A DNA stretch of 64,000 bases, taken from Lepidodermella squamata. Lineage: Eukaryota > Animalia > Gastrotricha. This document shows positions 31,363-54,505 of the stretch, piece after piece (positions within the stretch are counted from its first letter, which is position 1; every line of letters starts with the position of its first letter). The DNA lies in assembly GCA_047495785.1 (NCBI GenBank), contig JBLDXI010000019.1, forward strand, positions 3,162,001-3,226,000. The letters run 5' to 3'. Both the position numbers and the translations under genes were made by a program. The notes beneath the pieces were generated by a model. The model did no database searches and was not told the DNA's origin. It saw nothing but the letters and a program-made list of their open reading frames with translations.

Positions 31363-32002
31363 ATGCAGCGAAGCATCTTGAATCTTTTCCTGGCGCTAGT
31401 TTGCATTGCGGCGATAACCGTTGAAGCCAGACCAGGTAAAAATCAATAAAATTGAAATTTATATAATTAACTAATTGCAAGCCAATTTTCGAAAAATGAA
31501 ATTTCAGGAATTCCTACTCACACTTTAATTTTCTAATTTTTTCTATTTCATTACTTAATTTCAAATTTCAAAATTTTATGTTTGAAATTTTAAAATTAAT
31601 CAAATTTCGTTTATTGCATTTTGTCGGGATTTTTCTATAATTTTTCATGCAAATGTTTTTAATATTGCAGCCAAGCGTTCAGCTGATGATATTTCGAGCC
31701 TCGATGATTTTATTCGCAATTCACTTTTGAGTTACGTCAACGGCGATGACTCAGCATCGACCACTCAAACAGCAATCGCCGGCGGCGAAGAAGAACCCGC
31801 CGAGGAATCCGGCAGCCGCTACGTCTGCTCTCTGGTCAACTGCGTTATCCCCTACGAATCATGCTTAGCCAGCGCCCTTGGCCGGCCAAGCGATGATCAG
31901 CCGGCGCCTAGAGACGAGCATGAATCAGCCCTGCGCCGCGCCCGCGCCAGCATGTGCTACAACGAGATGCAACTGTGCTCGGCCAAGTGTGACGATGAGT
32001 GA
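31363..32002 (+). CDS. Secreted 6-Cys prepropeptide 1 (134 aa). Exons 31363-31435, 31671-32002
   Basis: Signal peptide MQRSILNLFLALVCIAAITVEA, a KR site, an acidic pro-region, then CSLVNCVIPYESCL...CYNEMQLCSAKC. Phase-1 GT-AG intron in frame. Confidence 0.8.
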
Positions 32003-34047
32003 AAAAAGCAAAGAAATCGGAGCGGAAAATCAGCCAAGCGGGGAAAAGTCGAAAGGAGATGCATTCCGATTTTTGAATTCGGAAATATTAAATTATTTCA
32101 ATTTTCCATGTTGTGAAGCTATCCCCTATATGATCGGTGATTATCGACGCGTGAAACTCCGAATTTACGGCACTGTAATAAATATTCAGGTCACACACCG
32201 CGTTGAGTTTAATTACTCATAATCTGTCTCTATCAAGGTCACATTTTTTAGGCAACAATATGTTGAAGTGGTCGGATTTTTTCTCAGAAATTTCCGAAAA
32301 ATGCTGGGTCACAATCAGCCTGATTAGTTCAAGGTACGCTCAACTCTTAAAAAAGATGAAATGACAGATGAGCAAGACTATAAAATTGATTAATCGACTT
32401 GGAAAAGCACTGTATCTAATTCGGCAAATGCCTATCAGGAACAAAACTTCCGATGAAAATTCCTCGGTGGCGCTTCTATCATTTCCGCATTTTTTTGTGA
32501 ATTCCTAACTTTTCCTATTTTTCAATATAAATCACTTAGCTCGAGTCTTGCTTTTGCAGTTCAAGTTTCTGATTTCCTAGCTAAGGATGTTAGAATTTCT
32601 CGAAATTTTTTCATTTTATAAATTGGAAAAACTAAGTATGGCCACTTGGAAAAAATTTATTTTTCACAAAACAATGCTGAAGAACAACCCACCATTCTCC
32701 GTTTTCACTTAACTAGTCACATGATAAAATTATCTCATGAATAATTCGGTCAACCTAAAAATAGCCATCGACTAAATGAGCACCCACGCCCACAACCACT
32801 GTAAATATTATTGAATGACCAAACCCAATAATCCCACAAGAATTATCCAAAATGTTGATCCCTCTAGAGGGCTGAAAGCTGAATGTAGTTATTTCACGCC
32901 TGGTCTAACTTGAAAGCTTATTATTGGGGGAAAAATGGCGTCAAAAGTGAGACGCGTCTCGATTTCTTCCTCGATTACGGCGCTTTCCTGTCGTTAAAGA
33001 AATAAAATTATACTCTCGAAAGTTTTCATTTCCGATATAAAAACCTGTCGACGTATGGTAAATACGTGACCTTTCAATAGCGGAAATAGCCGATCAACTT
33101 ATCGCTGCTATATGCCGACATTGGTCAGCAAAAATGGGAATAAAGCACTTGAAACATTTTCTAGCAAATTGAATTTCATTAAATTACACGCTGCGGGAAG
33201 GGAAAATTCTCAGTGACGCAGTATTGACTGGTCCAATTTTATACAAAGACGGGTCAAGTTGTATTGTTCGGGAATAAATTCAATAATTTTTCTCGTCTCG
33301 CTCAATAAAATCCACCATTGGCTATTCCCCAAACTGATTTTGCTAATTTTGTTTAAAAAACAAAAAATGTTCGTTTCTACTACGCACCCACGGCGGGGAC
33401 AACTCTTGCGTCTTTAATTTACGTTTAAATTTTTCACTTAATGTCCATTTTTTTTACAAATTCCTGTTATACTATCCGACTTTAATCTGATATATTGCTT
33501 TATTTCTAGCATATATTTTGAACGTTTCCAGCTGATGAGACGCGAGCCAGCGTTGAATTCTTGTTGCGGAAGAATTTATGAATGGATTGCTTCCGAGTGC
33601 AAGCAATCATTCACATTTTTACGTGGCGATTGTTTACAATAAAATGCCAACACAATCGCAAATTATACCGGACAGCTATCAACAAAACGTCGAAAATTCT
33701 CTCCCTCTCGGCGTCGGAATTCGCGCACTAAATAATCGCTTATTAATCATGCAAAAAATGTGGGCGCAGATACGATTTTTTATTTCGACTAATAATAGCG
33801 CGCATTCTTTAAGCGCGTGGCGCGCAATTTGTTTCCCGTCGTAAAAAAATCGAATATCTGGTACCAGGTATCGGAAATCGTCAGTCACGCCTTCTTGCTG
33901 CGTAGTGGCGAGGCTACTGCTTTTTTAATTGCTTGAAAAAAATTATTATTCATGTTTATTTAAAAGAGACCGTATTAAACAAATTAAGTGCAAAAAACTT
34001 TTTTAGACTATTTAAAACGGCATTTTTTATTCGGCGACCCGTGAAGA

Positions 34048-35240
34048 ATGGGGCTGTTAAGGATTATGGACAGTAAAACGCTGACAACACAACGAAACCG
34101 GCCTGTTGTAATTGCCATCCTACTCGTTGCCATGGTGACGGTGCATCAGAGTGCGTCAGCGCTGCCTGTTAGGCGATCTCGGCTTTCACCCAACCGTAAC
34201 GTTGTAGCTAATCAAATGTCAAGAGCTTCATCAACTGTTAATGTTAGCCAAACTCGAGGAACAGGTGAGCACAATTGCTATCACATATTATATTATTTTC
34301 GAAATTAATACTTCAAGGAAAATTAGTAAAAAATGGGAAAATCGAGAAAATTCCAAGAGAAAAATTAAAATATTTATAAAAAAAATCAAGTAAATTATAT
34401 AATATAAATTAATAAAAATAGCTAAAAATTGGAATAATGCGCCAGCTAAATCGGGGCGGAGTAGAATTTTTCAAATTTTTTCAAATTTTTTTCTTATTAC
34501 TTCAGATGGGATGAACTTTTTTCAAGTTGAACCTGATTAATGAGTTTTTAAACAATTTTAAAAAAATTCCTTATTTCGGAAAAATTTCAGCTTCTATTCC
34601 TTTACTCCTTGGAAAAATCTAGAGACATAGCTAATTCTAAAATTTTAAAATGTGATTGGAAAATTCCCTAAAATTAGGTCCCTGAAATCTACTCGAAAGT
34701 CGAGCTCATTCGATGATACAATGCAGAACCCAAAACCTGCCGCAACCTCACAAACCGGATGCAAGAACTGTACTACAATCCCATCAAATTCAGTTGAACC
34801 CCCAAAAAGCTCCGAAAAATTGAAAAATTAGGGATCTAACAAGTTCTAGTCGCGTGTGAACTTCAATTGTTGAAATTTAAATTTTTTCAAATTTTCAAAA
34901 CCTTACGAATAATTGCGGGAATTTTTTTAATTATTGAGACTCAAGTCTCTCGATATTCAATTTTTTCTCAAATTAAAATTTATTTTCAATTTGAATTTTT
35001 TTTTGTAATTTTTCAGAAGTCGCGATGTGCTTCCTATCTTCGTGCGTGATCAACTACGAAAGTTGCCTGAACATTGGCGAGGCGGTGTCCGAGTGCTACG
35101 CGGAGATGCGGCGGTGCTCGCGATCGTGCCGCGTCGACCCCAACGTCGCGTGGGCGTGGAACGTCAAGCGCAACCGCCGGGACCAGCAGCAACAACGGCC
35201 GTTCGCTTTCTTCGAGTCGTCCTTTTCCAGCGCCAAATGA
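34048..35240 (+). CDS. Secreted 6-Cys prepropeptide 2, paralogue of peptide 1. Exons 34048-34264, 35017-35240
   Basis: Hydrophobic signal VVIAILLVAMVTVHQSASA, RRSR site, CFLSSCVINYESCLNIGEAVSECYAEMRRCSRSC, then KRNRR. Phase-1 intron in frame. Start could instead be the Met at 34066. Confidence 0.78.
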
Positions 35241-36380
35241 CTCGCGCGTCTTCTGTCATAACGAGCGTTATCATCATCGTCATCTTGCCTAGATCTCTCC
35301 TCGATTTCTATTCTATATCATGAGAAAGAGCCAGAAAAATTCCTTCTCTTGTATACACTGATTTTTCTTTTTAGTCGAAAAAGCCTCTACCCTTCGAGAG
35401 AGTGAGAGCTCGCTTTTTCTAATCTTCGTGTTTGTGATGATTTTTTCTCAGCTTCGTCTCAACGAAATTTTATTTCAAATATATTTAATATCATTTTCAC
35501 TCTTCTAGCAAATATCTATAGCCCGACTCGTCAAGTTCTGTTTGTAAAAAAAATTGAAAAGCATTAAAGAATCAAGGGCGTTAAAGTTTGACTTTTTCAG
35601 AAAAAATCGAGCCAGAAATAGGGCATAATAAATAAGAAGAGTCCGGCTTGAAATATTGAAAAATTGAAATTTCCCTGAACACGTACTTAATGTCGGAGGA
35701 AATCAATAATAAGTTTCCTGCATCGACTAATTTCATTATAATATATGGAAATGACTTCCGTTTCAGGAGGTTGTTGAAAGAAATCGGAAACACCGGAAGG
35801 CCGTGCTGCCCTAGAAAAGCGTCGACCTTCAATTATAGATAGCATCGATATACTATTTATTTTTAGATTGAGCTGAATAATCAGCTTTTGCTAGAAAAAA
35901 CCGACAGTTTGGAAAGTATGATCGAGTTAATTCGTTGCTTTTAACTCTGAAAGTATAACCCCTACACGACACTCCATTCTGCGTTACGATAGACCCTGGG
36001 ATGATGCAAAACTTGTCCTGAATTCTTAAAATTATCGCTCTTTAGAGACTCGATCGGGCAAAAAATGACAGTCTCAATTATTAGCAGTACGCCCGAGATT
36101 GAAAACAAATGAGTGACATAATTAAGGTAAGAGGGTAAATGAGATCGGTATGATTCAGACTAATTTTCCTGAGTTCTCAATTTTTATTACGTTTTATTAG
36201 CCGAGGAAATTTCAAAAGGTTAGAAATTGAGGGACATGAGTACTTATGAGTATTTTTATTATTTTTGAAGTGAGTAAATTCTCGATAATGCGATAAAAAA
36301 CACAAAACCCATGATATAAATGATGCGAGCGACCTATTATTTATTAGCACAGTTGAAATCGCCTCATGATTTATATTTGT

Positions 36381-36522
36381 ATGATATAGTACGAGTATTT
36401 TATTTATATCTGAGATTCGTAGCACGAGATGCGGGCATGCTGGCGAGGCGGAGCCGAGTCGGCATGACCAAATCGAGTGCGGAGAATCCAGATATGAATG
36501 AATTACGAGTGCTATATCGTAA
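36381..36522. repeat. Imperfect palindromic MITE-like element
   Basis: Arms ATGATATAGTAC..ATATCTG..GCAC and GTGC..CAGATAT..GTGCTATATCGT surround a GCGGAGCCGAG core. Confidence 0.45.
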
Positions 36523-39500
36523 AATATTGCATGAGCATGGGTACTAACACTATATTTTTTGAGCGAATGCTATATTTTGGTAATAAATAGGCCTGGTCTT
36601 GAACGTGAAACATCCAGAATACAATTTCAAGGTACATCCAGCCGTATCCTTGGCGCATTTCTGTAAAATCTGAACCAGAATTATCGCAAAAAATATACTT
36701 TTATAATAGCAGAAAATGTTCCCCTCAAAACAGCGATTTCAACACCCTTGGACATAAAAATGTGAAAAACGGTGTCATTATTCAAGAAATCGCTGTCACA
36801 AGTTTCCCTCAAGACTTCACACTTTTCTTTACCTGAAAAAAACACATTTTTTCAATTGCTCTGAAATCATTATAAAATTCCGAAATTCAGCAGTGACTAT
36901 AAGCAATCATGATGTTCTTTGTCCAAAATCTCCTCTTTTCGCCAATTGATATGGCCCAGTTTAAAAGCGTATTTAAACGCAAAATCGGCTCATGGCTTCG
37001 TCTGACAAGTGTCAACAAACTGCTAAAAGCCACAGACGTAGTTGCAACTATCATGCAAGCCAAAAGTTCCGCTTACCTGAATTCGGACGAAAATTTGCTC
37101 AAAGAAGACACGCTATTTGAACTTGATGCAAGACTGCGAGACGCTTTTTGATGTGCGGGCAACGGGCCTAAAATTATTGTCACATTTAATGAGAATTGAT
37201 GTCACACGTAACCTTTTCCTGTACTAATTATAGTGCAGACTGCGTAGAAAAATCGGTCAAGGAGGACGAATGACGAGTTGGAAATGACTCGTGAGATTTA
37301 TTGACGAGACACAAGTGAATGAATGCTGACAACTGAAAAGTGGTATCAAGCTGAGTAATAGGTATTAGGAATCGAATTCTCCCGTTTGGATAAGCAAACA
37401 TTAAAATTGATTTCAGGTTTTCAAGAATAATGTCTAAAAATTATTTAGAATAAAAATTATTCATTTTATATTTATCATAAAAATTATTGTTATAATCGAT
37501 TAATTAATTGATAATTATTGTTTGAAAAATTAGTTTAAATTTTAAATAAATTTCAATAAATTTCAATAAATTTAATTTAAACAATCCCGTTATCACTCGT
37601 CACCCCGGTCTGACTATGATTTGAAACGACGAGTTGGCGAGCGAATAAAAGTGTGATTCAGACCCTTCAACTTAACCGAATCATATCCATCATCACATGT
37701 ATATTGGCAAGATAAACACCGCCTCGCACACAACGTAATGAGGTTAACATACCTGCTAATGATAGGCTGTTAAATCGAATATTAGACAAAAAGCTGGATT
37801 GATGTATGTGTGATTAAGCTTGTTCGTCATCATCATGTCTGAGTAATAACTGCCAGTTCGCTAAAATAAATCTATAGGTCGCAAGGACGTGTATATTGAG
37901 CTCCTTCTCACCACGAATTGTCTTTTTCTAAGGCGTTCCAACTACTAACCCGATCACCAAATCGAGTCCTACTAATTCCTTAATTAGAGCCTCGTGGTTT
38001 TGAAAATGTTTGCTAATTAGACGGCGGACAAAAATCTCAGTACTTCCATTTTTCTAAATTGTTGTTTAATTTATAGCCGACTGGATGAGTACGTGACGCT
38101 TCACCTACTTTTTCCTAAATAATTTCTTCTCGAATTTAAGCAACTCGCCAAATTTCTGCCTCGTTTCCTATCATCAGGGTCATCTCCTGCGGTCGTTCCA
38201 GTGATGTCTCAAGGCTCGAAATATTGAAACAAATGTATTACTGCTTGCTCGTCAATACTTATCGGATATTTTGCACTGGGCAGTTTGTTTGGAAAGGGTA
38301 TTAGCTTGCATTAAGATGATTTACAGACATGACGCGCTAGCCTTTGTTGGTTCAGGTGTCCCTATTTTCCGGTTTTCGCACCGGCCCAAGTGCTTGATTA
38401 GGTACTAGTGAGACCCCAACTTCGATGATGCCTTCAAATTTCAAAATAAGTTCGCGACTTCTTCTCGTTCCACCTTCATTTCATTCATCCGAAGAATTTC
38501 AACTTCCATTTGTCATCGAAATGAGTTCTCTTTTAATGCACAGGTTACTTGAACATCTTTTGGTCTCTAATTGAATTTGACTCGTTTTGAACAATTTGAG
38601 AACCATGCAACTCTTAGAAATTGAGTAACTCGTTTTTATGCTCATCACTTGACCATAAAATGTAGAACTCGCAATCAAATGAATCAGTCCGCTCAAAAGC
38701 AATTACATCGTGTCAGGTGTTAATTATGTTAGTTACGCAACGGTAGGCCGTAATTTCGTTGCCTTATGACTTGCTCGCTGCTGCCGAGATAGCTATTTAT
38801 GAAAGGGCGGGCTACAAATAATAAGACAACGTGCTGTTATTGCGAGCACACTCACGTGCAATAATCGGGCGCACGGCGAACCGTGACCTAGTGCGGACGC
38901 ATCGCACATCATCGCCGAGCTATAATCATAATTACTATCACGACGGTTCTCATTTTCTTGGTAACAAAAAATATTACTAATGAGAGATGATGATGACCCA
39001 GACACTGATGCATCTTCGTTTTCTTTCGTTTTATAGCTACAATTCCTTACTTCCAAACTGAAGCTCCGTTTTACTCCTGGGAAGTGGGGAAACAAGTCGT
39101 GGTAGTTTCAACCCAAAACTGATCAACCTTTCTGTTATTTGATAATCATGGCATAACTCCGACTCCTGTCAAGAGGTCGAAAGGTCGAATGCGTTACACT
39201 GCTCTGGCGATCAACCTTACACTCCCTTGATTCGCTCAGTTCATTTATTTTTCAGTTTTGAATTTGTATTTAGTATTGCGGATAATCTTGAGCCGGAATA
39301 ATATTACTTCGATAATTTGCTCACTTGTTCCCTCAAGCTAGAGCAACTTTAAAATTACTTCAATTCTCCGAAATTGTTTTGGATAGTTGAAATCTTCAAT
39401 CTTCAAATTTGTGTTGAATAATAGCAACATCCAGTGAATGTTTTTATAATTTTTTTCAAAAATGAGTAACTGCAGGAGTTAGAGAATTTTTTTAAATCTG

Positions 39501-40285
39501 TGCTAAAATAGACATTTTTTCGAAAATCTAAGGGCTTCGTGTAAGGGTGCGGTCAATCTTCCTGAACTGGGGCCTTACATATTTTTCCTACCCACCTAGG
39601 CACCACTCAACGTTGTAGGCTTTGTGACGAAGGATGTTGAATAAAATTCCCCAAATTGTATCGGCTACGTCTCGGTTTGATAGAATTTGACCCTCAGTTA
39701 TGAACGAAACATGTACCGACAATTCAGAGAACTTCAACTCTCAGTTGTCGCGTCATTTGAGCAACCAACATTTTGATAAAAATATTTTGCCATGTTTCTG
39801 AGCGAAAATTAAGAATTATTTACTCACTTGATCGCCTTCTGAAAAAAAATCAAGATTTTTCCTTCATTTATTATTATTATGACGATTTGCTCTCAAATCG
39901 TTGCTCATAGATCGCGTGCTCGCAAGTCATAGAAACTTGAATGAAAATTCCTGAATTGCCGGGTCGGTTTAAGAGTTGCCGCAGCAAATTCAGGGTAATT
40001 TTCTCACTTTTCGTGTTCTAAGTTGTCGCTTGAAAAATTTAAATTATATTTTTCTGATTTGTCGCGCTTTGAGCTGTCGCTCAGAGAAATAGCGCGATAT
40101 TCTTCCGAGTTGTCGTAGCTATATCTGAATGTTCGATTTCCGGACTTCGTGGCGCCGAATAAAAATGTAAAAAAATCCAGCTTAATTTTTTCGTAAAACT
40201 TGATTTTTTTCTTTTTGTTTTCCCTCACGCTTTTTAGTTTACCCACGATTATTTTACTTGATTTCAATCATCGATTGGCGATCTC

Positions 40286-43200
40286 ATGGCGACGACCAGC
40301 GGCTATTTCGCGTCGCCCTCCCCGTCGCAGGTGATCGCAGCCAACAACGCCAACGCCCTTCGCGAACTGGCGCTCATCGAACTCGAGCAATTACGCCACG
40401 AAACCGAACGAGTGCTATGCCGCCATCAGCAAACAAATCAGGCGGCGCCGTCTCAGCCCGCCGCCCGCCCGGCCCTCGTCGAAAAACTACTGCCAACCTA
40501 CCGAGCCTTGCTAGCTAGGCACAACATTCTGGTGAAGCAAAAAATCGGCTCTGGCAGTTATTCGAAAGTTCGCCTGGCTTTTCGCATTGTGCCAGCGTCA
40601 ACGTTCGGCTACCATCCGCTGAATGGCTCGTCGTCGAATTCGCTGCATTCGAACTTTAGCAGCAGCAATATGCCGGCGATTGATCTAGCCCAGCCAGAGT
40701 ACCTGCCTAGCAAGTACGATGAAATTCGACTCGACCCAGTTGCGGTTAAAATTGTTGATCGCCGTCGAGGTAAGCAGGAAATTGTGATTTATTGTGTCAT
40801 TTGGGGAAAAAATCATTACCAAATTATTGCATTCAGTACCAAACTTGATTGAATTCAATGATGACCGTACCAAATTATTCCAATCACTTCTAAATTTCCA
40901 ATTCGAAGGCCCAGCCTTCAACACTAACCTAACCCAAACCTAACCCTAACCTAACCCTAACCTAACCCTAACCTAACCCTAACCTAACCTAACCCTAACC
41001 TAACCTAACCTTTATCCTAACCCTAACCCTAACCAGTTAAATAACGAATAAAATGGTTTGGTATTGAATTAAATGAAATTTGGTATCGGCGTAAGATATT
41101 CCCAAATTTTTTCTTCTTTTTGAAATTTACAAGAAAATTATAAACATTTCCGGAATTAATGATCGATAAAAAATTGATTTTCTTAATTTAGTACTGAATT
41201 TTTCTAATTTTTTTGCAATTACGGCTTTCCTTTTTGATCGTGCTCCCATAGCCGTGGGAATTTTAATTAGCTACACTTTCTGGGTGGAATTAATATCGCA
41301 TCTGCCAGCTGAAGCATACATACCTCCCCAAACTCGTTTGGTTAATAAAATTTAAAATATAATATTAAAATTGGACTGGGAAACGTGAAACTGTAGAGAA
41401 ACCCTTGTGGGAAAATTAAAGCCTTGAAAATATTCGAAACCAGCATTTTTAAAATAACTTTTAACCGGGGCGAAATCAATTCAAGAGTAGTTTGCTAAAT
41501 TTTGCAAACATTTCGTAAATCACCTGAGATCTCGAACGGTTCACTGAACGAATTATTTAATATTTCGAATTTTGTGGTTCTTCAAATTAAGACAACTCCG
41601 TTTTAATTTCGTTTTGAATAATTTGAAAAATTTGGATAAATAAATGCCCTCGGAAATGTTTGCCATTATGATTCATCTATTTCTTAGTGCAAAGTTGTAC
41701 TGGAAAGTTTACTTTGAACTGGCCAAATTTCTTTCAACCGATCTCAGTAAACCACCAAATAACCTTCTAACTGAAGGTTTTAGGTCCGATTTTAGTATCC
41801 AACTTTTGATTGGAATATTTCTCTGTTGGATCGATTTTAGGATATGATCGATATTTTGGGATCAGAGTGGCTTGCAGCTGAGATTGATGTCAATCATCTG
41901 CGATTTAATCAACATTTTTGCGCAATTTCGCAAAGTCAAAAGCCAGAGAGTGTTATTCCGTTAAATTTTCCACATCCTGAAAATAATTTCTAGTCTAAGC
42001 AAATTGCTCACCTGAGATGACATTTCCTGTATTCCTGTTACGGAAAAATTCTTCCAAATTTTTAACTGATAATTTTGAAAATTTCAACAAATTTTAAGCT
42101 GCTAGCTATTTTGATGATCAATTTGTATTTTTAAATATTTTTTTTCAGTTTTTTAGTTTTCAGCTGAATATTGTTTTCTGTTTTTTTGCCTAGCTCCGAA
42201 GGATTACCAGACGCGATTTATGCCGCGCGAACTCGACATATGGGGCACGCTGCGCCACCCGAACATCGTTCGGCTGCACGAAATTTTTACGGATTCGCTC
42301 GACCGATTCGTTTTCATGGTGTCCGAGTACGTCGAGGGCGGCGACTGCCTGCGCTACGTGCAGCGCGTCGGCTCGCTCGCCGAACCCACCGCCTGCCACT
42401 GGGTTGCTCAGGTAAGACCGCGGTGCATTTTTTTCGGTTCAGCGAACGGTTTGACCTAGCTCAGGTCTCAGGTGTATCAGACATCGTAGCTAATTGGCTC
42501 GGTCAATGTCCAGTTTGTTTGTTGTAATTGAATTTATTCCCGTATAAGCTAATAATAATGACGAGTCGATGGCCCAATTTTGACAGGTATTTGGCGTTTG
42601 GCGTGGCAAAAAAAGACAATTTCTAAGTAGCTCGTGAGAGGGTTTTGCGGTATTTTCTTATGCCCAATTTTAGCTTCTCTCTAACCGCAGGAAATTAGGC
42701 TGAGTGCTAGTTAGTTTCCTCATAATGGTGCTATTTTATTGGAAAAACATCATGGACGTTAGCGTCCGTAGTGACAGTTCACGTTTTTAGTACATTTTCA
42801 TATTTTAATGGGGTAATCGCTCGCCGAACCCTGCCACTGGGTTGCTCAGGTAAGTTTTTTTGCTAACGGAAGGTTTGACCTAGCTCAAGTGTATCCGAAA
42901 TCGTAACTAATTGGCTCGGTTAATGTCCATTTTGTTTGCTGTAATTAAATTTATTCCCTTAAGCCAAATTGGCAGGTCAAAAAAATCAGGATTTCTAAGT
43001 AGTTCGTGAGGGGTATTTTATGGTATTTTCTTATGCCCAATTTCGGCTTCTCATAAGTCGCAAGAAATTAGGCTGAGTGCTGATTGCTCATTAGTTTTTC
43101 TCGTTAAAGCGCGAATTTATGGTAAAAGAAAAATTATGGACGTTTGCGTCTGCAATGCCGGTTCACTTATGTTTAGGACATTTTAATTGTAATGGGGTAA

Positions 43201-44887
43201 TTTTTATTAACTAGCAGAAAAACAATTTACATGTTGACCAATTTTGTGGATGTAAGTTGAAGCCACATGATAGTATCATGTCTCAACTAATGTACTTACC
43301 TTACACCTGAAAATCATGATGAGTAAAATGAGCGTTTGTTAATTCATTTTAGGGAGCTTACCACTTGCCCAATTTGAAAAATGTTAAAAATTATTTAAAA
43401 CCATTATTTAAAACCAAAGAGTTCGATGCGTTGATAAAATTGTTTTTTTTACTGGCTAATTATTTTCATCATTTGGCGTTATTTTGAAATGGAAAAAAAA
43501 TAATTTCGTTCGATTTTATTCTTCCTGTAGATCTGCTGCGGCGTTCGTTACATGCACGCGAAGGGCGTGTGCCACCGTGATCTCAAGCTGGAAAATTTGT
43601 TCATCGACAAAACAGCGACGCAGATAAAAATCGGCGATCTGGGTTTCGCTCGGCGGTTCGGCAACTCGGCGCGTGAGCTCAGCCAGACGTATTGCGGCTC
43701 GAAATCGTACGCAGCGCCCGAGATTCTACGCGGCGTACCCCATGACGCGAAAAAATCTGACGTGTGGGCCGTGGGTGTTATAGCGTACATCCTACTAACG
43801 GGTAAAATGCCGTTCGACGAGTCGCAGAGCAACCGGCGCATCATCGACGACCAGCGGCAGTTGATTGTGCTCAATTGGAACCGATTTCCGTTACTTTCGC
43901 TCAATTCTCGATCTTTCGTCGATCGCGCACTCACATTTTCGTACAATAAACGGTAAGAAACTACATTCTTTTATTATTTGATATTGAATTGATCCCAAAT
44001 CATTTGCTAAAAAATAACATTGCAAAGTTTTGATTTTTAGTTGAACTCTTAGAGTAAATAAATTTCGTTTGGAATTGATTCAAATTTGATTTAGATTTGA
44101 TCCGGAAATGATTCCTATTTCCTAATGATAAATTTCTAAAGTTTTATTCAAATGTTGCAAATAATTTGATCTGAAGTTGAGTAGAATTTGATCCAAATTT
44201 GATTGATATAACAAATTGATGTTCCTTTTGTTTTTAATTCAAATTTGATCATAAATTCACTCAAGGTCGTAATTTGATCTTCTCTATGTTAAGTTTTGAT
44301 GTATGCACTATTTCAGACCGGCGATTTCTGTGTTGTTGGCTCATGATTGGCTGAAGCCGCACGGCGGTATGATTGCCAAATTGGAAGCAACGCTGAACCC
44401 GAACCATGGCATACTCGCCCCAATGCAATCAACCCCAATCACCCATCAGCCTGCTCAGCCGCGCGTTGTTAGATCCACTCAACATGTCCCGCATCAAGCC
44501 GCGCCTTACAAGCGGCCGTTCCTGTTGACTGAACAATTTCATCAGCAAGCGCCGCCAAATTTCGACTCAGTCAACGATACGAGCGATCCAATGGTTGTAA
44601 CCTCCCCTCCCGGTGCGCCTCGAGGTCAAGTTAGAATGGATACAGCGCCAAGCTTGGCTTCACCCGTGATCGGAAATTTACGAAACGGCACTTCAACGTC
44701 ATCATCCGCTGCCACGACTCCGATCTCTGCATGTCCGACGGACCAAGCCAGTTTCGAGCGCATGTTTGGCAAAGCTATTGTTACTCTATATCCGGGACTC
44801 GTTCCAACTCACAATTGCTCACCCCAGTGCCAGTGTGGTGGTGGCTTGAACCCGTCGCGATTCGGTTTTCGAATCGGCTCATCGTGA
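40286..44887 (+). CDS. TSSK: Testis-specific serine/threonine kinase family (TSSK-like), 564 aa. Exons 40286-40769, 42194-42411, 43531-43952, 44317-44887
   Basis: IGSGSYSKV, VAVKIVDRRR|APKDYQTRFMPRELDI, HRDLKLEN, DLGFAR, LSQTYCGSKSYAAPEILRG.P..KKSDVW. Exons sum to 1695 nt, in frame. Confidence 0.88.
40924..41034. repeat. Mixed CCTAA/CCCTAA telomere-like tract within TSSK intron 1, bracketed by imperfect inverted repeats (~40836-41087)
   Basis: ctaaccctaacctaaccctaacctaaccctaa... with flanks TACCAAA..TGAATT and TTTGGTA. Confidence 0.75.
42373..43200 (+). repeat. Diverged tandem duplication (42373-42816 and 42817-43200) that copies the end of TSSK exon 2 and its donor site
   Basis: TCGCTCGCCGAACCC..TGCCACTGGGTTGCTCAGGTAAG occurs twice, followed by collinear intron sequence ending AATGGGGTAA in both copies. 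Confidence 0.85.
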
Positions 44888-45482: not shown

Positions 45483-46928
45483 ATGAGAATAATTACATCC
45501 GTTCTAGTCCTACTCCTTTCCTTGTCTATTTTACTCGAAGACAGATTTTACCTGGTTCAAACTTACGAAGTCTCGTGTGAAGTCCAGCTATCGGATGCTT
45601 ATAAGTGGGGAACAAGTGCGGCGATTACAGCCGCTGCAGTTCTTCTCGGCACAGTGCCAACTTTAACTATAAACCCTCCCGCAATTGGTCAATTTATCGG
45701 TGTTACTACTACAGCTGTCTTGCGTTTACTCTGGCCATTAATCATCGGAGCGAACGATCATTGCGCCAGAGATGCGTTGCAAGTCGCATGGCGCCAGGCT
45801 GAGTTGATGACCAATATCAAACTCAGCAACTACACCCTGGAGAAACGAAAGCGCTTTTTCGACGGAATGAGTGATACCGCGAAAAGAGCCTACGAATGGC
45901 TTCCAATTATCAAGGACCCATCTTTAAGTGACGACGCAAGGAAAGCTGCTTACCAGGAGTATTACGAGGCGCTCGAGTTCATTTACTTCAGAGCTAACGA
46001 TGAAAGAGCAGTGTTTTTTGAAGGGTCCTCTTCTTCTGCGGACAGTGGCCCAGCGGCGGTGCAACAAGCCGCTGAATTCTTCATGTATATTCGCGAGCTT
46101 TCATTCATGCAGCTGGGAGTAGCAGTTGAAATGGCTGGTAACCCTTTGCTGTCGCCAATAGCAAAACAAAAGTTGACGGCAGACATCCAAGAAGATGCGA
46201 TGTTCTACTGGAAAGCTGGCCACTCAGCTATTGAGAAAATCGTCCGGTGTTTACCTAATGACCGAATCGGCCCGGCTAGATTAGCGTTGACAGTCCACCT
46301 TAAGCCGATGTTTGATTTCGTGGGGAAGCTAGCCTTTAAATCCAGTCCGTTCACATATCGAAAGGCACTGGTTTATAAGCCGATTACTAGCGGTGACTAC
46401 ATCGCCCTTCGGCTGAATGATGGAAGTTACGAGGGGTTTGAAAAGGTTTTTCGAAGATCAGTCCCGCAAACTCAGCCTCAAAATGCGGATTCGTGCCCGA
46501 GATGCGGCTGGGATTTGTTTGACCACAGATTTTCGCCCGAGTCTGGCCCAGATCCCAGTATGCCGACGAGCCAATCGTGGCGATGTAGGGATAGTGTTTA
46601 TCACGTGACAAATTACCAAGATATGGGAGTTCCAATTCTTACCTGCGAGAATATCATAATTACATACAGAAAGGAACAGGTATATAGGTATGTTTTTACT
46701 ACGAATATCAAATATTTTGAAAATAATTTTGAATTTTTTAGTGAGGACTTGAGCCAACTTGCCCAGTTCATGATTTTGGCCACAAATGACACTGCTCAAG
46801 ACCCAGCTAAACGGCGGGAAATTAACTGTGGCTCTCCAATTCTGGATCGGGATCACGTCCTTTTAGTTCCGACGCCAGAATGGTCTGGAAAAGTGTCAAC
46901 TATTGACGCTATCATTTTGAAGGCTTAA
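45483..46928 (+). CDS. Secreted Cry-domain-I-like / beta-trefoil-like protein, paralogue 1 (481 aa unspliced; 463 aa if intron 46688-46741 is removed)
   Basis: Signal peptide, hydrophobic hairpin ending LLWP, E.MTN.K.SN..L....FDG, helix RELSFMQLGVA, then SGDYIALR, CPRCGWDLFD and PILDRD. An AT-rich GTATGT...TTTTTTAG 54-bp in-frame intron sits at the same site and phase as the intron of paralogue 4. Confidence 0.85.
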   Translation: MRIITSVLVLLLSLSILLEDRFYLVQTYEVSCEVQLSDAYKWGTSAAITAAAVLLGTVPTLTINPPAIGQFIGVTTTAVLRLLWPLIIGANDHCARDALQVAWRQAELMTNIKLSNYTLEKRKRFFDGMSDTAKRAYEWLPIIKDPSLSDDARKAAYQEYYEALEFIYFRANDERAVFFEGSSSSADSGPAAVQQAAEFFMYIRELSFMQLGVAVEMAGNPLLSPIAKQKLTADIQEDAMFYWKAGHSAIEKIVRCLPNDRIGPARLALTVHLKPMFDFVGKLAFKSSPFTYRKALVYKPITSGDYIALRLNDGSYEGFEKVFRRSVPQTQPQNADSCPRCGWDLFDHRFSPESGPDPSMPTSQSWRCRDSVYHVTNYQDMGVPILTCENIIITYRKEQVYRYVFTTNIKYFENNFEFFSEDLSQLAQFMILATNDTAQDPAKRREINCGSPILDRDHVLLVPTPEWSGKVSTIDAIILKA

Positions 46929-46999
46929 AGCTATTTTCAGTAAATTAGAGTATTATTTATTCATTCATTTTCATATTTTTAGGAATTTTAATTGAAAAA

Positions 47000-48448
47000 A
47001 TGAGGGCCAACTTCATATGGAATTTCGGCATAATTTCCGGTTTTTTCCTGTATTACTCCTCCGATTGCCAAATTTACGAAGTTTCATGCGAAGTCGCGCA
47101 GTCTGATGCGTACAAATGGGGTACCAGCTCTGCCTTCATGCTATCATCAGTCGCTTTAGGTGCCGTCCCGCCTCTCACCATTCTTCGCCCACCTGGCGCC
47201 GGAAACGCCGTTGGAGCCGCCACTACGGCGTTATGGCGCTTCTTATGGCCAATGATCATCGGGCAAAACGACCACTGCGTTGCTAGGGCGATTCGCGAAA
47301 TGATGCAACGATTCGAGATGATGACTAATCAAAAAGTTAACAACGTTACCATGGAAGAAATTCGGCGTTGGTTTGACGGGCATGCTGATACTGCGAAAAA
47401 GGTCTATGAATGGATTCCTATAATCAGAAGTGCTAAGGACGATACTACTAGACGGGATGCGTCTATTGAATTCTTGAAGGGGTTAAAATACCTGTATTAC
47501 TCAGCTAACGAGGCTCGGGATTCATTTGTCGAGGGAGCGATTGCTCAATCGGCGAGTTTCTTAGCCCTCCGAGAACTGGCGTTCCTTCAGTTCGGAGTTT
47601 CGGCCGAGATTGTCGCGAATAAATTCACGCCAGATGTTGTCAAGAAGAAATTTCTAGAAGACTACAAAGAAGACGTTGAGTTCTACTGGAAATCGAGCCA
47701 TGTTGCCGTTGAAAAACTCGTCCGATGCCTGCCGAATGACGATATTGCTAAAGCAAGAGCTGGCTTGTCTAGCTATCTCAGGCCATTGTACGATTTTGCG
47801 TATAAATTCATTGAAAAAAACGGATCTGTGGTCTACTCGCGGCAAGCTGTGTACAAACCTGTTACTAGTGGAGATTTCGTCGCTTTGAGGCAGAATGATG
47901 GGAAATTGGTTGTTTTCGAGGGTATCTACCGGTTGCCCGTTCACAGAGAATCGCCGGCCACACGGGAACCGTTCAACTCAACTTGCCCCGTTTGCGGCTG
48001 GGACTTATTTGACGACCGTTATTCGCCTAATAGCAATTTTATCGAAAAATCCTTCCCATGCCGAGATTCGATTTTCGACATATTGAATGGGCAGCAATTC
48101 GGTACTCCAATCAAAACCTGTGAAACAGTTGCCCTCAGCTACCGGCCGCAATTCATCCGCCAGCAAATTCAAAAAAGGAGGGCGAAGCTCAAGGCTGAAA
48201 TGGCTGAGAAAAAGGACGATGTTGAGGCAAGTGGGATAATTCAGAACGCCGAGGCGGCTATTTCGATACTAGTCGATGCGCAAATGCAGCCGCCGTTGTT
48301 TGTGGTGAGCGGTTACAATGAAACGACTAATGAGTTACTTCAGTGTGGACGGGTCGTGCTCAACCGGGACCGCATCCAGCTCACGCCTGTATCGGCATGG
48401 CTCAACAAAGTAAACACACTTGACGTTGTTATTCTTAAAGCCGAATGA
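47000..48448 (+). CDS. Secreted Cry-domain-I-like / beta-trefoil-like protein, paralogue 2 (482 aa, apparently intronless)
   Basis: Full-length homology to the other three paralogues (QIYEVSC, YKWGT, FLWP, KLVRCLPN, CPVCGWDLFD, LDVVILKA). Confidence 0.87.
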   Translation: MRANFIWNFGIISGFFLYYSSDCQIYEVSCEVAQSDAYKWGTSSAFMLSSVALGAVPPLTILRPPGAGNAVGAATTALWRFLWPMIIGQNDHCVARAIREMMQRFEMMTNQKVNNVTMEEIRRWFDGHADTAKKVYEWIPIIRSAKDDTTRRDASIEFLKGLKYLYYSANEARDSFVEGAIAQSASFLALRELAFLQFGVSAEIVANKFTPDVVKKKFLEDYKEDVEFYWKSSHVAVEKLVRCLPNDDIAKARAGLSSYLRPLYDFAYKFIEKNGSVVYSRQAVYKPVTSGDFVALRQNDGKLVVFEGIYRLPVHRESPATREPFNSTCPVCGWDLFDDRYSPNSNFIEKSFPCRDSIFDILNGQQFGTPIKTCETVALSYRPQFIRQQIQKRRAKLKAEMAEKKDDVEASGIIQNAEAAISILVDAQMQPPLFVVSGYNETTNELLQCGRVVLNRDRIQLTPVSAWLNKVNTLDVVILKAE

Positions 48449-48568
48449 TTGCTCATCAAATACTCAGCTTTTGCAACCAAATAAAACGATATTTGCTTTC
48501 TTATAAGAGGTTTTGCGTGCTGATTATTACAGGGTGAATAATTGATAGGAAAAGTCATTTCACCGAAA

Positions 48569-49957
48569 ATGGCTACTAAATTTTACAAAATTTTGTTTTT
48601 TCTAACCCTAATTTTGTCGAACGAGGTTTTGAATTACTGCAGAGCTCAAATTTATGATGTTTCGTGCGAAACTCAAAGCAGCCTCGGCTACAAGCTTGGG
48701 GCCCAAAACGGCTCGATTAATCTGCTGGTTTTTCTCCTGACTGCGATTCCGGCTCTATCTGGTGCGGATAGACTTACTCGCGCCTTACTCGGCCCTATGA
48801 CTGGTTACATAATGCGAGCGATCTGGCCACTTCTCATCGGGCAGAACAGCCATTGTACCCAGGAAAGTATGGCTAAAGCCCAAAAACTCATTGAAGCTAA
48901 CACCGATTTACAACTCACGAATCACACGTTGGAGAAACATCGCAGATTATTCGAAGGACTGGCCCATACTGCGAATAAAGCCTACGCGTGGTTACCAATC
49001 ATCCAATCAGCGCAAACTAGCGAGTCGGACAAAAGAATCGCGCTAGCTGAGTATTATGAAGAGCTCGGATTTTTGTACCTTCGCACAAATGATGTCCGGT
49101 CAAATTATATTGAAGCTTCTTCCGATTTCCAGCAGCAGGAAAAATCGGCCGCTGATTTATTCGTTATGATGCGAGAACTGGGATTTCTTCAACTCGGCGT
49201 CGCCTCGGAGCTAGCTGTATCTCCTTTGATTAGGTCTGAATCAGTAAGGACCAAGTTGATGAACGATCTCAAAGAAGATGCGACTTTCTATTGGAGAATC
49301 AGCCATTCAGCCGTGGAGAAGTTGGTTAGATGCCTACCAAATGATAGGATTGGGCCCGCGAGAAGTGATTTGTTGAACCACCTCGCTCCTCTACTTCAAT
49401 ATACTGGAAAACTGGCTTTTCAGGACAAAGCTTTGACTTACAACAGGTCGCTGGTTTACGACCCCCTTTTCAGCGGAGATTTCATCGCTCTACGGCAAAA
49501 TGATGGTATTTTAGCTCCATTCGAATCGATTTTCAAGCTACCAAGGAAATCATCAGAAGGGCCTAATTTGTGCCCTAAATGTGGCTGGGATTTGTTTGAT
49601 AAGCGATATGAAAAACCTGAATTTCTGCTAAAATGTCGCGACAATATTTTCGTGATAACCACCGAACAGCCGCTTGCAGTGCCCGGGTCTCAAATCAGGA
49701 CTTGTGACATGGTTTCTATCGACTATCGGCGCGAGACTCAAATTCCGCATTTTCCGACTGCTAAACCTAAGTTTTTCTTCTTGACATCATTCAATGAAAC
49801 TACGAACAAGCCGAAACCATGCGGTCAGCCGATTTTAGACCGCGACCGAATCCAGCTGACGCCAATGAAGCGGAAAAACGCGAATGATGACGCGAAGATC
49901 GAGTACTCAATCCCTCGCACTACCTCTCTTGATTTTGTGTTGATTAAAGCGAGCTAG
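48569..49957 (+). CDS. Secreted Cry-domain-I-like / beta-trefoil-like protein, paralogue 3 (462 aa from ATG 48569, intronless)
   Basis: Signal MATKFYKILFFLTLILS...; IWPLLIGQN, RELGFLQLGVA, SGDFIALR, CPKCGWDLFD, CGQPILDRDRIQLTP. Confidence 0.87.
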   Translation: MATKFYKILFFLTLILSNEVLNYCRAQIYDVSCETQSSLGYKLGAQNGSINLLVFLLTAIPALSGADRLTRALLGPMTGYIMRAIWPLLIGQNSHCTQESMAKAQKLIEANTDLQLTNHTLEKHRRLFEGLAHTANKAYAWLPIIQSAQTSESDKRIALAEYYEELGFLYLRTNDVRSNYIEASSDFQQQEKSAADLFVMMRELGFLQLGVASELAVSPLIRSESVRTKLMNDLKEDATFYWRISHSAVEKLVRCLPNDRIGPARSDLLNHLAPLLQYTGKLAFQDKALTYNRSLVYDPLFSGDFIALRQNDGILAPFESIFKLPRKSSEGPNLCPKCGWDLFDKRYEKPEFLLKCRDNIFVITTEQPLAVPGSQIRTCDMVSIDYRRETQIPHFPTAKPKFFFLTSFNETTNKPKPCGQPILDRDRIQLTPMKRKNANDDAKIEYSIPRTTSLDFVLIKAS

Positions 49958-50124
49958 TCAATAAAAGTCACGATTTGCAACAAGTGTTTGTTAATTACTC
50001 AAGTGTTTACTCATGCGCACACAAAGGCGGGTTGATGAGTGGGCGTGCGTGCGTGACCTCATTCCGGGTAATTGCTACACACACCACGCGCAGTTACACG
50101 CACTCACTACTTCTGGTTCACAAA

Positions 50125-51609
50125 ATGATTACCAGGCTCGTTATTGTAGTTGTGCTAATTACTGATTTAACCACCCCTCAAATTTACGAAGTCCCGTGCT
50201 CTGTCCAATCGAGTGATGGCTATAAATGGGGAACGACTGCTGCCTTCATGGTGGGGTCAGTCATCGCTGGTGCTACCCCGCCTTTAACTTTATTAACCCC
50301 AACTGGAGCAGGCTCAGCAGTTGGAGCAGCCGCTACTGCAATTCTCCGTTTCTTATGGCCGATGATCATCGGTCAAAACGATCGATGCACGTCTATCGCG
50401 TTGAAAGAGATGCAGACCAAACTGGAGGCGCTTACCAATCAAAAAATTAGTAATTTGACCCTGGACGAAATACAGCGGTGGTTCGATGGACATGCCGATA
50501 CTGCGAAGAAGGCCTATGAATGGATTCCAGTCATCCGAAACGCTAATAACGATCAAGCGAAGCAAGACGCGTCTCTGGAATTCCTGAAATCGTTGAAGTA
50601 TCTCTACTTCTCCGCGAATGAGGCTAGGGATGCGTTTGTTGAAGGCTCCATCAGTCAAGCTGCGAGTTTCATGGTTCTCCGAGAGCTGGCCTTTCTCCAA
50701 TTTGGTGTAGCTGCTGAGATAATCGGCAGTAAGTTCACCCCTGATGTCATTAAGCGGAAATTTATGAAGGATTACGAAGAGGACGTCAAATACTATTGGC
50801 AAGCTGGTCATCTTGCGGTGGAGAAACTGGTCCGCTGCATGCCAAACACCGAAATTGGGAAGGCGAGGCAAGGTCTGTCCGCTCATCTAAGGCCGCTCTA
50901 CGACTTTGCGATTCGTTTTATGCAAAAGAACACATCTGCGATGTATCAGCGCCAAATTGTTTACAAACCTCTTCGCAGCGGGGATTTTGTGGCCCTGAGG
51001 CTCAACGACGGCCAGTTGACGAGTTTCGAGTCGATTTTCAAGATACCACCGCGGAGCCCGGCTGCTCAATGCCCAGCGTGTGGTTGGGATTTGTTCGACG
51101 ACCGGTATTCGCCGACTAGTGGCAACTTTCAAAAGTCTTGGGCTTGTAAAGATTCGATTTTCGAAATCGAACTAGCGTCACCGAGTGATTTTCAAGAAGG
51201 ATTCGCTGCGATACCTATTCGAACTTGCGATTCAGTGCTGTTCAAGTACCGGCATCAAAAGAAGTAGGTTTTAATCGTAACAAAGGACGCTTACCTCATT
51301 TGACCATAGTAACCGGAAAATTGGTAACTAGGGACGCGTTGATCTAATATCCATAGCAACCTGGTAACCAGACACGCTATTTATATTTACCTTAGCAACG
51401 CCGTAACTAAGGACGCTTTTCTTGTATTTTTCAGTCAAATCGTTCAGCAATCAGCTTTCAGCCTGCCAACATTTATCATCAATGCTTACAACGATACCAC
51501 TAATGCACAGTTGCCGTGCAATCGACCTATTTTGGACCGAGATCGAGTTCAGCTGACTTCGAGCTACCTACAGATTGATGCAATTCTTATTAAAGCCGAT
51601 CAAAGTTGA
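50125..51609 (+). CDS. Secreted Cry-domain-I-like / beta-trefoil-like protein, paralogue 4 (437 aa). Exons 50125-51263, 51435-51609
   Basis: Signal MITRLVIVVVLITDL. Splicing AA|GTAGGT...TTTCAG|T restores the family C-terminus (CNRPILDRDRVQLT...IDAILIKA). Most similar to paralogue 2. Confidence 0.87.
51276..51420. repeat. ~40-bp minisatellite (3.5 copies) filling the paralogue-4 intron
   Basis: Recurring GTAAC..GGACGC....CCATAG(T/C)AAC units. Confidence 0.7.
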
Positions 51610-51745: not shown

Positions 51746-54505
51746 TCAGCAGGCGAATTCGTCATCGCCAAGGCGTTTGCTAGGCGGTACCAGGTGAGCC
51801 GGCAGTTCGTTGGGCAATTCGTGGCCCTCGAGGCGCAGTTTGATTAGGTAATTAGCCAGAGCCCATTCATCGTTGTCTAGATTGCCATCCCGGTCGATGT
51901 CTGAAAGCTTCCAGATGCGGCCGAGGACAGGGTTGGGCAATTTTGATTGTACCAGGACTCGCTTGGCCACGGCGCCAGAAACTTTGCCATCATCAGAACA
52001 ATTTTGCTATGAAAAATGGAAAAAATTATCGCATTCTTCAAAAATTAACTCACAAATAAACTAAATTCCCCAATCACTCAATCTTCGGATCCAATAATTA
52101 AAAATTATTTTTGAAAAAATCTGAAAATTTTGAAAAAATGAAAAAATGAGAAAATGCTGAATAACCAGCGCGTTTCGGTAAATTTGAAGTATTTGGGCAA
52201 AACTTGAGAAATTTACCTGGAACGAATAGTCGTATTCTTTCCGGAATTTGTTAACAATCCAATCAGGCTCATTCCGACCGGCGTCGAAGCCTTCCAAAGC
52301 CCCATGGCCGAACACTTGGTCTTTATTAGAGTTAAGCACACGGGCTGCAGGGGCACTGCTGCTATTTTGATCACTTGTTGCTGCTGCTTTGATAGCTGCA
52401 AGGTCCATAGCTGCTTCTTCTTTCGGCAGTAGCAACATCAGCTGAGCTACGTCTTGACTCAGCAAATCGTCAACGGGCTTGATGTATTTCGACTAAATTA
52501 AACAAAAATTATAAATATTAAAAATAAATATATTTGAAGGACGACTATTCGAATTTTCTATGGAGCTTATCATTTTAAGAATTGCGGTCTTTTCGGCTGA
52601 GGAAAAATTTATCAAAAGCTTCAAATATTGAATTAATGGTACATTTTTCGAATTGTTCAATTTTGTATTTTCTGAAACATTTGAAATTTCAATTTTGAAT
52701 TTTTAAAAATTACATCAGATTTCGGGTTTTTTTAAATGGCTAGGAAAATCTTCTAAATCGATTCCCAATCTTGATATTTTAAAGCCAATTAAAAAGTTTC
52801 GGAAAAGATGAAAAAACTCACATGTAATGAATGAAAACTTGTAAAATCTTGGTGCTGCAGATGTTCTCGCATGCGCTCAATATTTGGCATATCGCCAAGA
52901 GGTATGCCATGCTCGCGCGAAACCTTCTCGAAAATTCTATCCAAATTCTTAATCAAATCTCGCTGCTTCTTATCCTTGCCAATCACCGGCATCGCCTCTT
53001 TCAGCTCAGACATGATGTAAGCGTGACATTTCGCCATTCTCGCTCGTTTTATCAAATCGTTCAATTTACGCAGGGCCGCACTCCGCGGCAGGCTTTGTAA
53101 ATCTAGAAATAAATCTGCCTCTTCCAGTTCGAACAGCTTTCGGTTGTGGTCGAACAGGCGTGGTTCGTTCCAGAAGGAGCCGATGTAGACGCGGATGACC
53201 TCGGGCGTGGCGAGCACCTTGCCGAGCGACCACATCAGGGCACCGTAGACACGCATGAGTTGCTGCGCGTCGACACGGTCCGACTTGTTGAGCACGATGC
53301 GAATTTTATCCTCGTGGTGCTTCATCCGCTGAATGGTTAGGTTCAGCTCGTCGGAAATATCCAACTTGTGAGCATCGAAGAGCAATCTAAAAAATAAATA
53401 CCAATTGCAGGTTAAATAAGGAAAATAAAACTTTCGAGCACCAGAAAGGTTGGTTTTTGGGTTTTATTGCCAACGATTTCTAAAATTTAGCAGTTGGGTA
53501 TGTTGAATTATAAAATTATAAAATTGAATTATAAAATTGAAATTTCACAAAATTTTTGAAATTGTTGATATTTTGATGCCTATTTTTTGGAAATCTTGAA
53601 CATTTGATTACTCCCAATCGAAGCTTTAATTTTAAGAAAGTATCATCAAAAAATTCAATTATTCTCATAAAAATGACGAGATATTTATCTTAACCTGTTT
53701 ATCTAATTTCTTGGATGGCTTGAATCTTTATTTTAAACAAGTCCAATTTCTCGGAAAAAAATAGCAAATCCCGGTGTAATAGTGTCATCGCTATCCATCA
53801 AAAAAAATTCAGTGTCATGGATTTTCCTCAAATTTTTCTGAAATTCCAAATATTTCTGACCTTAAAATCCATTCTGGTCCGATTTTGTTCATTTTCTTTT
53901 AAATTTAGATGAAAGATGAATCTAGTGGGCGAAGTAAATTCTACTCACATGATGCGATCGGCTCGTTCGAAAAACCACTCAAAAATGGCGAAAATATCGT
54001 AATTTTCCGACTGCTTATTGCCCGATAGAATGCCAGGCGTGTCGACAAACGTAAAATTCTGCAGCAAATCGTTGTTAACCAGCGACGCCTGGAACCGGTT
54101 CAAGAAGCTCGTGCCAAATTTCTGCAAATTCGTAAATTGCCGCGACGCATCGCTGACCAGGGCGTGACCTGGTATGAACGAATTACCGCCCGTCTCCTGG
54201 TTATTACCTGGGTGCATAACTGCGATAAACCGGTCCGTGGTCGGCTCGACCCCGATGTGCATGCCCGGGTAGTCTTGTTCGAGGAGGTAACGGATAAAAG
54301 TTGTTTTTCCGGTTGAATATTGCCCGACTAGAACGACCATTGGCTTCGCGTCGAAATCGGCATCTCGCAACGGGGGCGAGTGAAATTGTTCGAATTTGTA
54401 AAATTCTTCCAGGGGCATCAGCTTGTTTCTGTACAACCGCTTCAGGCCGTCGATGATCGAGTCGAATGTCTCGATTTTCTTCTTCTTTTTCAGCGTGCTA
54501 AACAT
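51746..54505 (-). CDS. EHD1: EH-domain-containing ATPase (EHD/RME-1/Past1 family), 552 aa. Exons 54505-53949, 53386-52822, 52492-52217, 52006-51746
   Basis: P-loop GQYSTGKTTFI, EPTTDRF, DTPGILSG, LLFDAHKLDISDE, LMRVYGALMWSLGKV, and EH domain SKLPNPVLGRIWKLSDIDRDGNLD. Exons sum to 1659 nt, in frame. The symbol marks the family, not strict orthology. Confidence 0.93.

Follow-up and report, generated by a model that had tools for sequence, protein, structure and literature searches.

What kind of protein is encoded by four closely spaced, mutually similar genes that match no described family? This question is raised by a locus of the gastrotrich Lepidodermella squamata (assembly GCA_047495785.1, contig JBLDXI010000019.1), where a stretch of 64,000 nucleotides (nt) was analyzed (positions 3,162,001 to 3,226,000 of the forward strand; hereafter the window, whose own numbering is used throughout). 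An earlier, sequence-only reading had proposed that the array encodes secreted proteins resembling domain I of the Cry toxins of Bacillus thuringiensis. The observation itself was confirmed and, judging from predicted structures, the resemblance of fold appears to hold, but sequence searches did not place the proteins in the Endotoxin_N family. What is new here is the division of the family into two subfamilies, A and B, and their conserved pairing, with the B gene preceding the A gene.

The array occupies positions 45483–51609 of the plus strand and is composed of four tandem paralogous genes, g1 to g4 (Table 1), encoding proteins of about 460 amino acids (aa). The number of genes originally reported was borne out by the six-frame list of open reading frames (ORFs) and by a tblastn search of the window against itself, both of which revealed exactly four family members and no fifth copy within the 64 kb. 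Pairs of paralogues matched each other with tblastn E values of 4e-79 to 1e-155 and share 39–61% identity. The intergenic spacers are 71 (g1–g2), 120 (g2–g3) and 167 nt (g3–g4) long; all four genes start in the context AAAATG, and AATAAA is present downstream of g2, g3 and g4. The ORF of g3 had been listed from a TTG codon, and the ATG at position 48569 was chosen as giving a leader similar to those of the other paralogues, while for g4 the best ATG (position 50125) was used.

Comparison of the coding sequences revealed that synonymous sites are saturated between the paralogues (proportion of synonymous differences, pS, 0.74–0.84), the corresponding nonsynonymous values (pN) being 0.25–0.40. 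For the pair g2–g4, the ratio of nonsynonymous to synonymous substitution rates (dN/dS) is about 0.09. The family is under strong purifying constraint, and the combination of saturated synonymous sites with low pN indicates that the copies are old and constrained, and are not decaying.

Neighbor-joining trees were constructed from 362 well-aligned columns of ten members, i.e. the four proteins of the window and six relatives identified in metagenomic data (see below). In 100 of 100 bootstraps these separated subfamily A (g2, g4, P0001, P0002 and P0003) from subfamily B (g1, g3, P0004, P0005 and P0006), in agreement with shared insertions and deletions. A and B are anciently diverged. Within them, g2 and g4 are sisters (96%), and the sisterhood of g1 and g3 is not clear. 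The order of genes, B followed by A, is the same in all five distinct pairs, two located in the window and three at metagenomic loci (Table 1); locus L002, which is L001 assembled from another sample, was not treated as a separate pair. This fixed order suggests a two-component system. An ORF adjoining a relative on L001 (positions 4589–6013, minus strand) was rejected as a member of the family (14% identity).

The fourth paralogue had been read as a single ORF, which proved incorrect. Its coding sequence is split: some 380 codons are followed, after approximately 170 nt containing in-frame stop codons, by a terminal piece of 57 codons that continues in the original frame. The 57-codon piece matches the C-termini of g2 (E value 3e-13) and g3 (7e-12), and the interval has GT at its start and a polypyrimidine tract followed by AG at its end. 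Short GT-AG intervals were also found in the relatives P0003 (subfamily A) and P0006 (subfamily B), in the same codon phase and at the same position in the protein, with the conserved C-terminal segment located 3′ of the interval; at this common intron, both proteins (380 and 379 aa, respectively) had been truncated by the gene caller. The interval in g4 is probably a phase-2 GT-AG intron common to these relatives, and the gene is probably not broken. The coding pieces of g4, P0003 and P0006 were searched and compared separately. Much of the g4 interval is taken up by three to four copies of a direct repeat of 17–31 nt. Close to the start of its last fifth, g1 contains a 54-nt in-frame AT-rich stretch (GC content 0.17–0.33) that includes a small tandem repeat, has GT..AG-like ends and is located exactly at the site of the phase-2 intron of the relatives. 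This stretch, which does not interrupt the ORF, is possibly a small intron; the mature g1 protein would then be 18 residues shorter.

Each of the four proteins begins with a leader of 18–28 residues with a strongly hydrophobic core, preceding a conserved Y-x-V-x-C motif. On a heuristic reading of this core, the leader fits a signal peptide. Eight Cys columns are conserved across the family, and N-glycosylation sequons occur in shared columns, one of them in seven of the ten aligned members and another in all five members of subfamily A; the secreted-type anatomy that had been deduced from leader, cysteines and sequons is thus supported. The order of the subsequent elements is common to the ten members: a hairpin, charged amphipathic helices and one non-amphipathic hydrophobic helix. 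The hairpin comprises about 50 residues, among which Gly, Ala, Ser and Thr are frequent, has a Pro/Gly turn and an invariant Cys on either side and ends with a W-P dipeptide, invariant in ten of ten aligned members. The hydrophobic helix carries invariant E, Q and E residues, is hydrophobic in all ten members and is presumed to be the buried central helix of the bundle. The motif strings quoted for paralogue 4 in the sequence-only reading (the post-hairpin helix, W-F-D-G and the hydrophobic helix) are all present.

The two subfamilies differ in the conservation of these elements. Subfamily A is the more conserved (41–61% identity among its members), and what is preserved in its hairpin is a sequence with a Gly-x-x-x-Gly turn region, Gly-rich and nearly identical among members, and not hydrophobicity alone. 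Subfamily B (31–41% identity) evolves faster and its hairpin is degenerate. The strong divergence of the hairpin in paralogue 3, remarked on previously, was evident as extra charged residues and an internal sequon. The 150–190 residues that follow the helical domain form a Cys-rich domain, with a CPxCGW motif and five further Cys conserved in the family, without known relative, for which Pfam, PDB profile and homologue searches were all empty; the linker within it varies among members and is long and helical in g2.

Protein g2 was used for structure prediction. The AlphaFold model of the whole protein (predicted local distance difference test score, pLDDT, 64.8) contains a helical N-terminal domain and a beta-containing C-terminal domain, and a Foldseek search of the PDB with this model ranked Cry1 toxins first, at template modeling (TM) scores of 0.19–0.26. 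The N-terminal domain modeled separately (about 260 aa) was predicted with medium confidence to form eight helices (pLDDT 72.6, predicted TM-score 0.70). Among its top 50 Foldseek matches in the PDB, 24 were B. thuringiensis toxins of six classes (Cry1, 3, 4, 7, 8 and 11). For 23 of these 24, the TM-score normalized to the query was 0.48–0.58 over 193–265 aligned columns (e.g. a root-mean-square deviation of 3.0 Å over 193 columns for 8w7n), with a Foldseek probability of 1.00; the exception was one Cry8Ea1 chain (TM-score 0.36, probability 0.87).

The best non-Cry matches in the same top 50 were short de novo helical binders (query-normalized TM-scores 0.31–0.34), and ClyA, 14-3-3 and armadillo or designed repeat proteins did not exceed 0.29. 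Cry domain I was the one fold in the PDB that was matched consistently. Folds of the 14-3-3 and repeat-protein types were rejected on TM-score, as was a ClyA-type fold (ClyA/HlyE chains, query-normalized TM-scores 0.14–0.18, probability at most 0.25). Searching a viral structure library returned noise only. As far as can be judged from models, the N-terminal domain probably folds into a bundle like that of Cry domain I; the proposed Cry-domain-I likeness appears to stand at the level of fold, with no homology implied, but not at that of sequence, and no match reached an E value of 0.001.

The distribution of the family was examined by several searches. A word-based search with g2 yielded three relatives (44–46% identity), and a family profile run exhaustively against 1.84 billion representative proteins, a collection from which the four proteins of the window are themselves absent, recovered seven relatives only, two of them short fragments. 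None of the seven carries a name: six are ORFs of ENA metagenome assemblies and one comes from a soil read set. The latter, P0007, from read set SRR4051812 of the soil catalogue, is divergent and consists of an N-terminal fragment of 101 aa; in view of its origin in soil data, as opposed to the ENA metagenome assemblies of the others, the family may not be confined to a single habitat or lineage. The contigs on record for relatives P0001 to P0006 (none is on record for P0007) are eukaryotic, gene-dense and animal-like, with Ric8, TLC, WAP and Cys-loop channel genes.

No homologue was obtained in word-based searches with the N-terminal domain of g1 alone or the C-terminal domain of g2 alone, no vertebrate relative in the profile search of 1.84 billion proteins, and no relative in a pattern scan of JGI metagenome contigs or in a pattern scan, with tblastn confirmation, of prokaryotes represented by one genome for each of 185,579 species. 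Whole proteins, N-terminal domains and C-terminal domains gave no significant Pfam or NCBIfam match, even with E values up to 10 admitted, and single-sequence and profile searches of PDB chains returned nothing real. The family appears to be undescribed and very narrowly distributed, and is eukaryotic, most likely animal.

The genetic surroundings of the array are consistent with this assignment (Table 1). Convergent with g4, and with its 3′ end 137 nt from that of g4, lies an EHD-type gene, an exon of which matches the solved structures of EHD2 and EHD4 (E value about 1e-73). The sequence is clearly not of human origin; its EH-domain exon, for instance, deviates at many positions from that expected of vertebrate EHD proteins. 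The two sets of long paralogous ORFs with PAN_1, Laminin_G_3 and F5/8-type-C domains probably represent a pair of large genes with small introns that encode secreted lectin-like proteins, and the reverse transcriptase (RVT_1) ORFs between them look like retroelement insertions. The claim of an animal-type genome context is supported by the intron-bearing EHD neighbor, the PAN/Laminin_G/discoidin genes, the reverse transcriptase ORFs and the contigs of the relatives. The RVT_1 ORFs are located within or next to a segment of elevated GC content (0.57 at 14–16 kb). The region 26000–44000 has a lower GC content (0.36–0.42) and few ORFs longer than 100 aa, with no Pfam match among those tested. An ORF directly upstream of g1 (44303–44887, plus strand) encodes a Pro/Ser/Thr-rich protein without match. 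No Rfam RNA genes were found in the 64-kb window.

Table 1. Features of the array, domains of protein g2, gene pairs of the family and neighboring genes. Positions are those of the window unless a locus (L001, L003, L004) is given.
Feature	Position	Strand	Description
g1	45483-46928	+	subfamily B; one ORF, 481 codons
g2	47000-48448	+	subfamily A; one ORF, 482 aa
g3	48569-49957	+	subfamily B; 462 aa; divergent hairpin
g4	50125-51609 (stop end)	+	subfamily A; two collinear same-frame coding pieces and an intron-like interval of ~170 nt
g2 residues 1-24	47000..47071	+	signal-peptide-like leader: hydrophobic core, then polar stretch, then Y-x-V-x-C
g2 residues 25-285	47072..47854	+	N-terminal all-helical domain; predicted eight-helix bundle, Cry-domain-I-like
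g2 residues 40-88	47117..47263	+	hydrophobic hairpin, Gly/Ala/Ser/Thr-rich; Pro/Gly turn; W-P end; flanked by C30 and C93
g2 residues 183-206	47546..47617	+	uniformly hydrophobic helix; mean Eisenberg hydrophobicity 0.36, hydrophobic moment 0.05
g2 residues 286-482	47855..48445	+	C-terminal beta-containing Cys-rich domain; CPxCGW; five conserved Cys; variable linker
Pair g1-g2	window		B followed by A
Pair g3-g4	window		B followed by A
Pair P0004-P0001	L001 6514-9243		B followed by A
Pair P0005-P0003	L003 8533-11143 plus downstream		B followed by A
Pair P0006-P0002	L004 640-3328		B followed by A
EHD-type dynamin-like ATPase gene	51746-54505	-	several introns; convergent with g4
Paralogous long-ORF set	2883-11567	-	PAN_1, Laminin_G_3, F5/8-type-C (discoidin)
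Paralogous long-ORF set	19993-25543	-	PAN_1, Laminin_G_3, F5/8-type-C (discoidin)
RVT_1 ORF	12059-13672	-	E value 1e-32
RVT_1 ORF	14810-15697	+	E value 4e-25

The reading that we put forward, as a tentative proposal and one that is possible rather than probable, is that these are secreted, disulfide-stabilized and glycosylated two-domain proteins, working in B plus A pairs, whose Cry-like bundle opens and inserts into a membrane. They would be released as soluble monomers, with the hydrophobic elements packed within the bundle. At a target membrane, which might be recognized via the orphan C-terminal domain, the bundle would open, and the hydrophobic hairpin, the central helix or both might insert and oligomerize into an alpha-helical pore. 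In such hetero-oligomers, A would supply the insertion hairpin, conserved and Gly-rich, and B, with its degenerate hairpin, could act as a partner subunit in binding or assembly, by analogy with binary alpha-pore-forming toxins. Opening and insertion of the bundle is the accepted mechanism for Cry domain I and has been proposed for jellyfish toxins. Any biological role, such as the venom, defense or immunity functions suggested in the sequence-only reading, is an inference, as is pore formation.

Several results weigh against this proposal. The profile check suggested in the sequence-only reading was negative: hmmscan detected no Endotoxin_N (PF03945) match in the four window proteins at E values up to 1, nor in 12 members of the family at E values up to 10. 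Profile searches of PDB sequences recovered no Cry chain, and no bacterial or named protein was obtained in the exhaustive profile search, which leaves the family without a sequence link to toxins. The model of the N-terminal domain was built from a shallow alignment of 12 rows, and its hairpin region has a pLDDT of about 50–60. The best Foldseek E value was 0.014 (the usual limit being 0.001), identities to the Cry chains are 8–15%, and helical bundles readily match one another. The C-terminal 150–190 aa are too small a region and cannot correspond to Cry domains II and III. Finally, the pairing could be explained as an old tandem duplication retained by co-regulation.

Some of the same results can be accommodated by proteins that are secreted but non-lytic, for example carriers of lipids or other hydrophobic ligands, or structural components of extracellular matrix, cuticle, egg coat or secreted casing, in which the C-terminal domain would serve adhesion or cross-linking and the likeness to Cry toxins would be convergence of fold. 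The secreted-type anatomy fits such a function, the array adjoins lineage-specific secreted lectin-like genes, the pair g2–g4 is under strong purifying selection and shows none of the fast diversification that is frequent among toxins, and neither a significant Foldseek E value nor a sequence link to toxins was obtained. However, Cry domain I is the sole whole-domain match in the PDB with a TM-score above 0.5, whereas lipid-binding helical proteins in the top-50 list reached query-normalized values of 0.19–0.20; moreover, the conservation of sequence in the subfamily-A hairpin, including its Gly-x-x-x-Gly turn region, is not readily explained in this way. We consider a non-lytic function somewhat unlikely.

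The hairpin might instead be a permanent anchor of an integral membrane protein, a receptor or adhesion molecule in which, once the signal peptide had been cleaved, the short N-terminal piece and the large remainder would both face the extracellular space or the lumen. Three of the window's four genes indeed encode two hydrophobic segments of about 19–22 residues, with Kyte-Doolittle means of 1.6–1.7; the invariant cysteines flanking the hairpin would then share one side of the membrane, and AlphaFold is unsure of this region. The hydrophobicity is nevertheless borderline, a near-invariant Arg lies within the second arm, the arms are packed into the bundle in the model, and the hairpin of g3 contains a sequon. 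In one relative of subfamily B, 10 of the 51 hairpin columns hold charged residues and the remainder of the protein is conserved, which argues against a permanent anchor throughout the family. An anchoring function is therefore improbable. A recent horizontal gain of a bacterial Cry-type toxin gene, to which the nearly intronless array genes (compared with the several introns of the EHD gene) and the resemblance to a bacterial toxin domain might point, is very improbable in view of the lack of any prokaryotic relative in the species scan and the protein collection, the absence of Endotoxin_N, Endotoxin_M or Endotoxin_C matches in the family, the GC content of the array, which is ordinary for the window both overall and at third codon positions (GC3), the spliceosomal-type intron common to both subfamilies, and the saturated synonymous sites, which indicate that the family is old in the host lineage.

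Alpha-pore toxins of the Cry-domain-I type have so far been recognized in B. thuringiensis and, by modeling alone, among the jellyfish toxins of cnidarians. If the proposed membrane-inserting function were true, the present proteins would constitute a third family, unrelated in sequence and organized as two-gene pairs, in another animal lineage; a further class, perhaps with two components, would be added to the effectors of animals, and a function would be provided for an orphan family with no annotated member in the databases searched. The family would then be relevant to the question of whether the bundle is a shared module of ancient origin or a fold that has arisen several times. A bolder version, which we regard as quite unlikely, is that the pairs encode a binary alpha-pore toxin of a non-cnidarian animal, whose N-terminal domains share their origin with Cry domain I and the jellyfish toxins, as an ancient insertion module of bacteria and animals. 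To our knowledge, gene-dense, intron-poor contigs such as those of the relatives are not what would be expected of a cnidarian. Should the proteins prove to be non-lytic, the case would call for caution in inferring function from fold matches between helical bundles.

Among known systems, the jellyfish toxins (CfTX, CaTX, CrTX, CqTX) have the same overall design. In these cnidarian-specific secreted proteins of 40–50 kDa, a signal peptide is followed by a helical N-terminal region for which a transmembrane segment is predicted; their models are nearest to Cry domain I, they lack a Pfam domain, and several paralogues occur per species (PMC8214413). The family described here matches them in size and architecture (leader, helical N-terminal region, hydrophobic segment, Cry-domain-I-like model), which is a likeness of design and not membership. 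The kinship with jellyfish toxins that had been suggested did not extend further: neither the exhaustive profile search nor the word-based searches returned any of them, the libraries being assumed to include these toxins.

Domain I of the Cry toxins (e.g. 1dlc Cry3Aa, 5zi1 Cry7Ca1, 9buv Cry1Fa and 2c9k Cry4Aa) is an up-and-down bundle of about seven helices around a central hydrophobic helix; the bundle predicted for the present proteins is similar in size (about 240–260 aa) and would likewise have one buried, uniformly hydrophobic helix. Unlike Cry toxins, the proteins of this family are eukaryotic, have a signal-like leader, disulfide-type cysteines and sequons, and possess an additional hydrophobic Gly/Ala-rich hairpin at the extreme N-terminus. 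They have no protoxin extension, and a single small Cys-rich C-terminal domain takes the place of the beta-prism (domain II, Endotoxin_M) and the beta-sandwich (domain III, Endotoxin_C).

In the binary toxins of the ClyA family, one component alone carries a fully hydrophobic membrane-spanning element. These toxins come from bacteria and lack both the signal peptide and the C-terminal Cys-rich domain, but with respect to genetic organization YaxAB and XaxAB may offer an analogy to the A and B proteins, as both systems comprise two diverged paralogous helical components encoded by adjacent genes in a fixed order.

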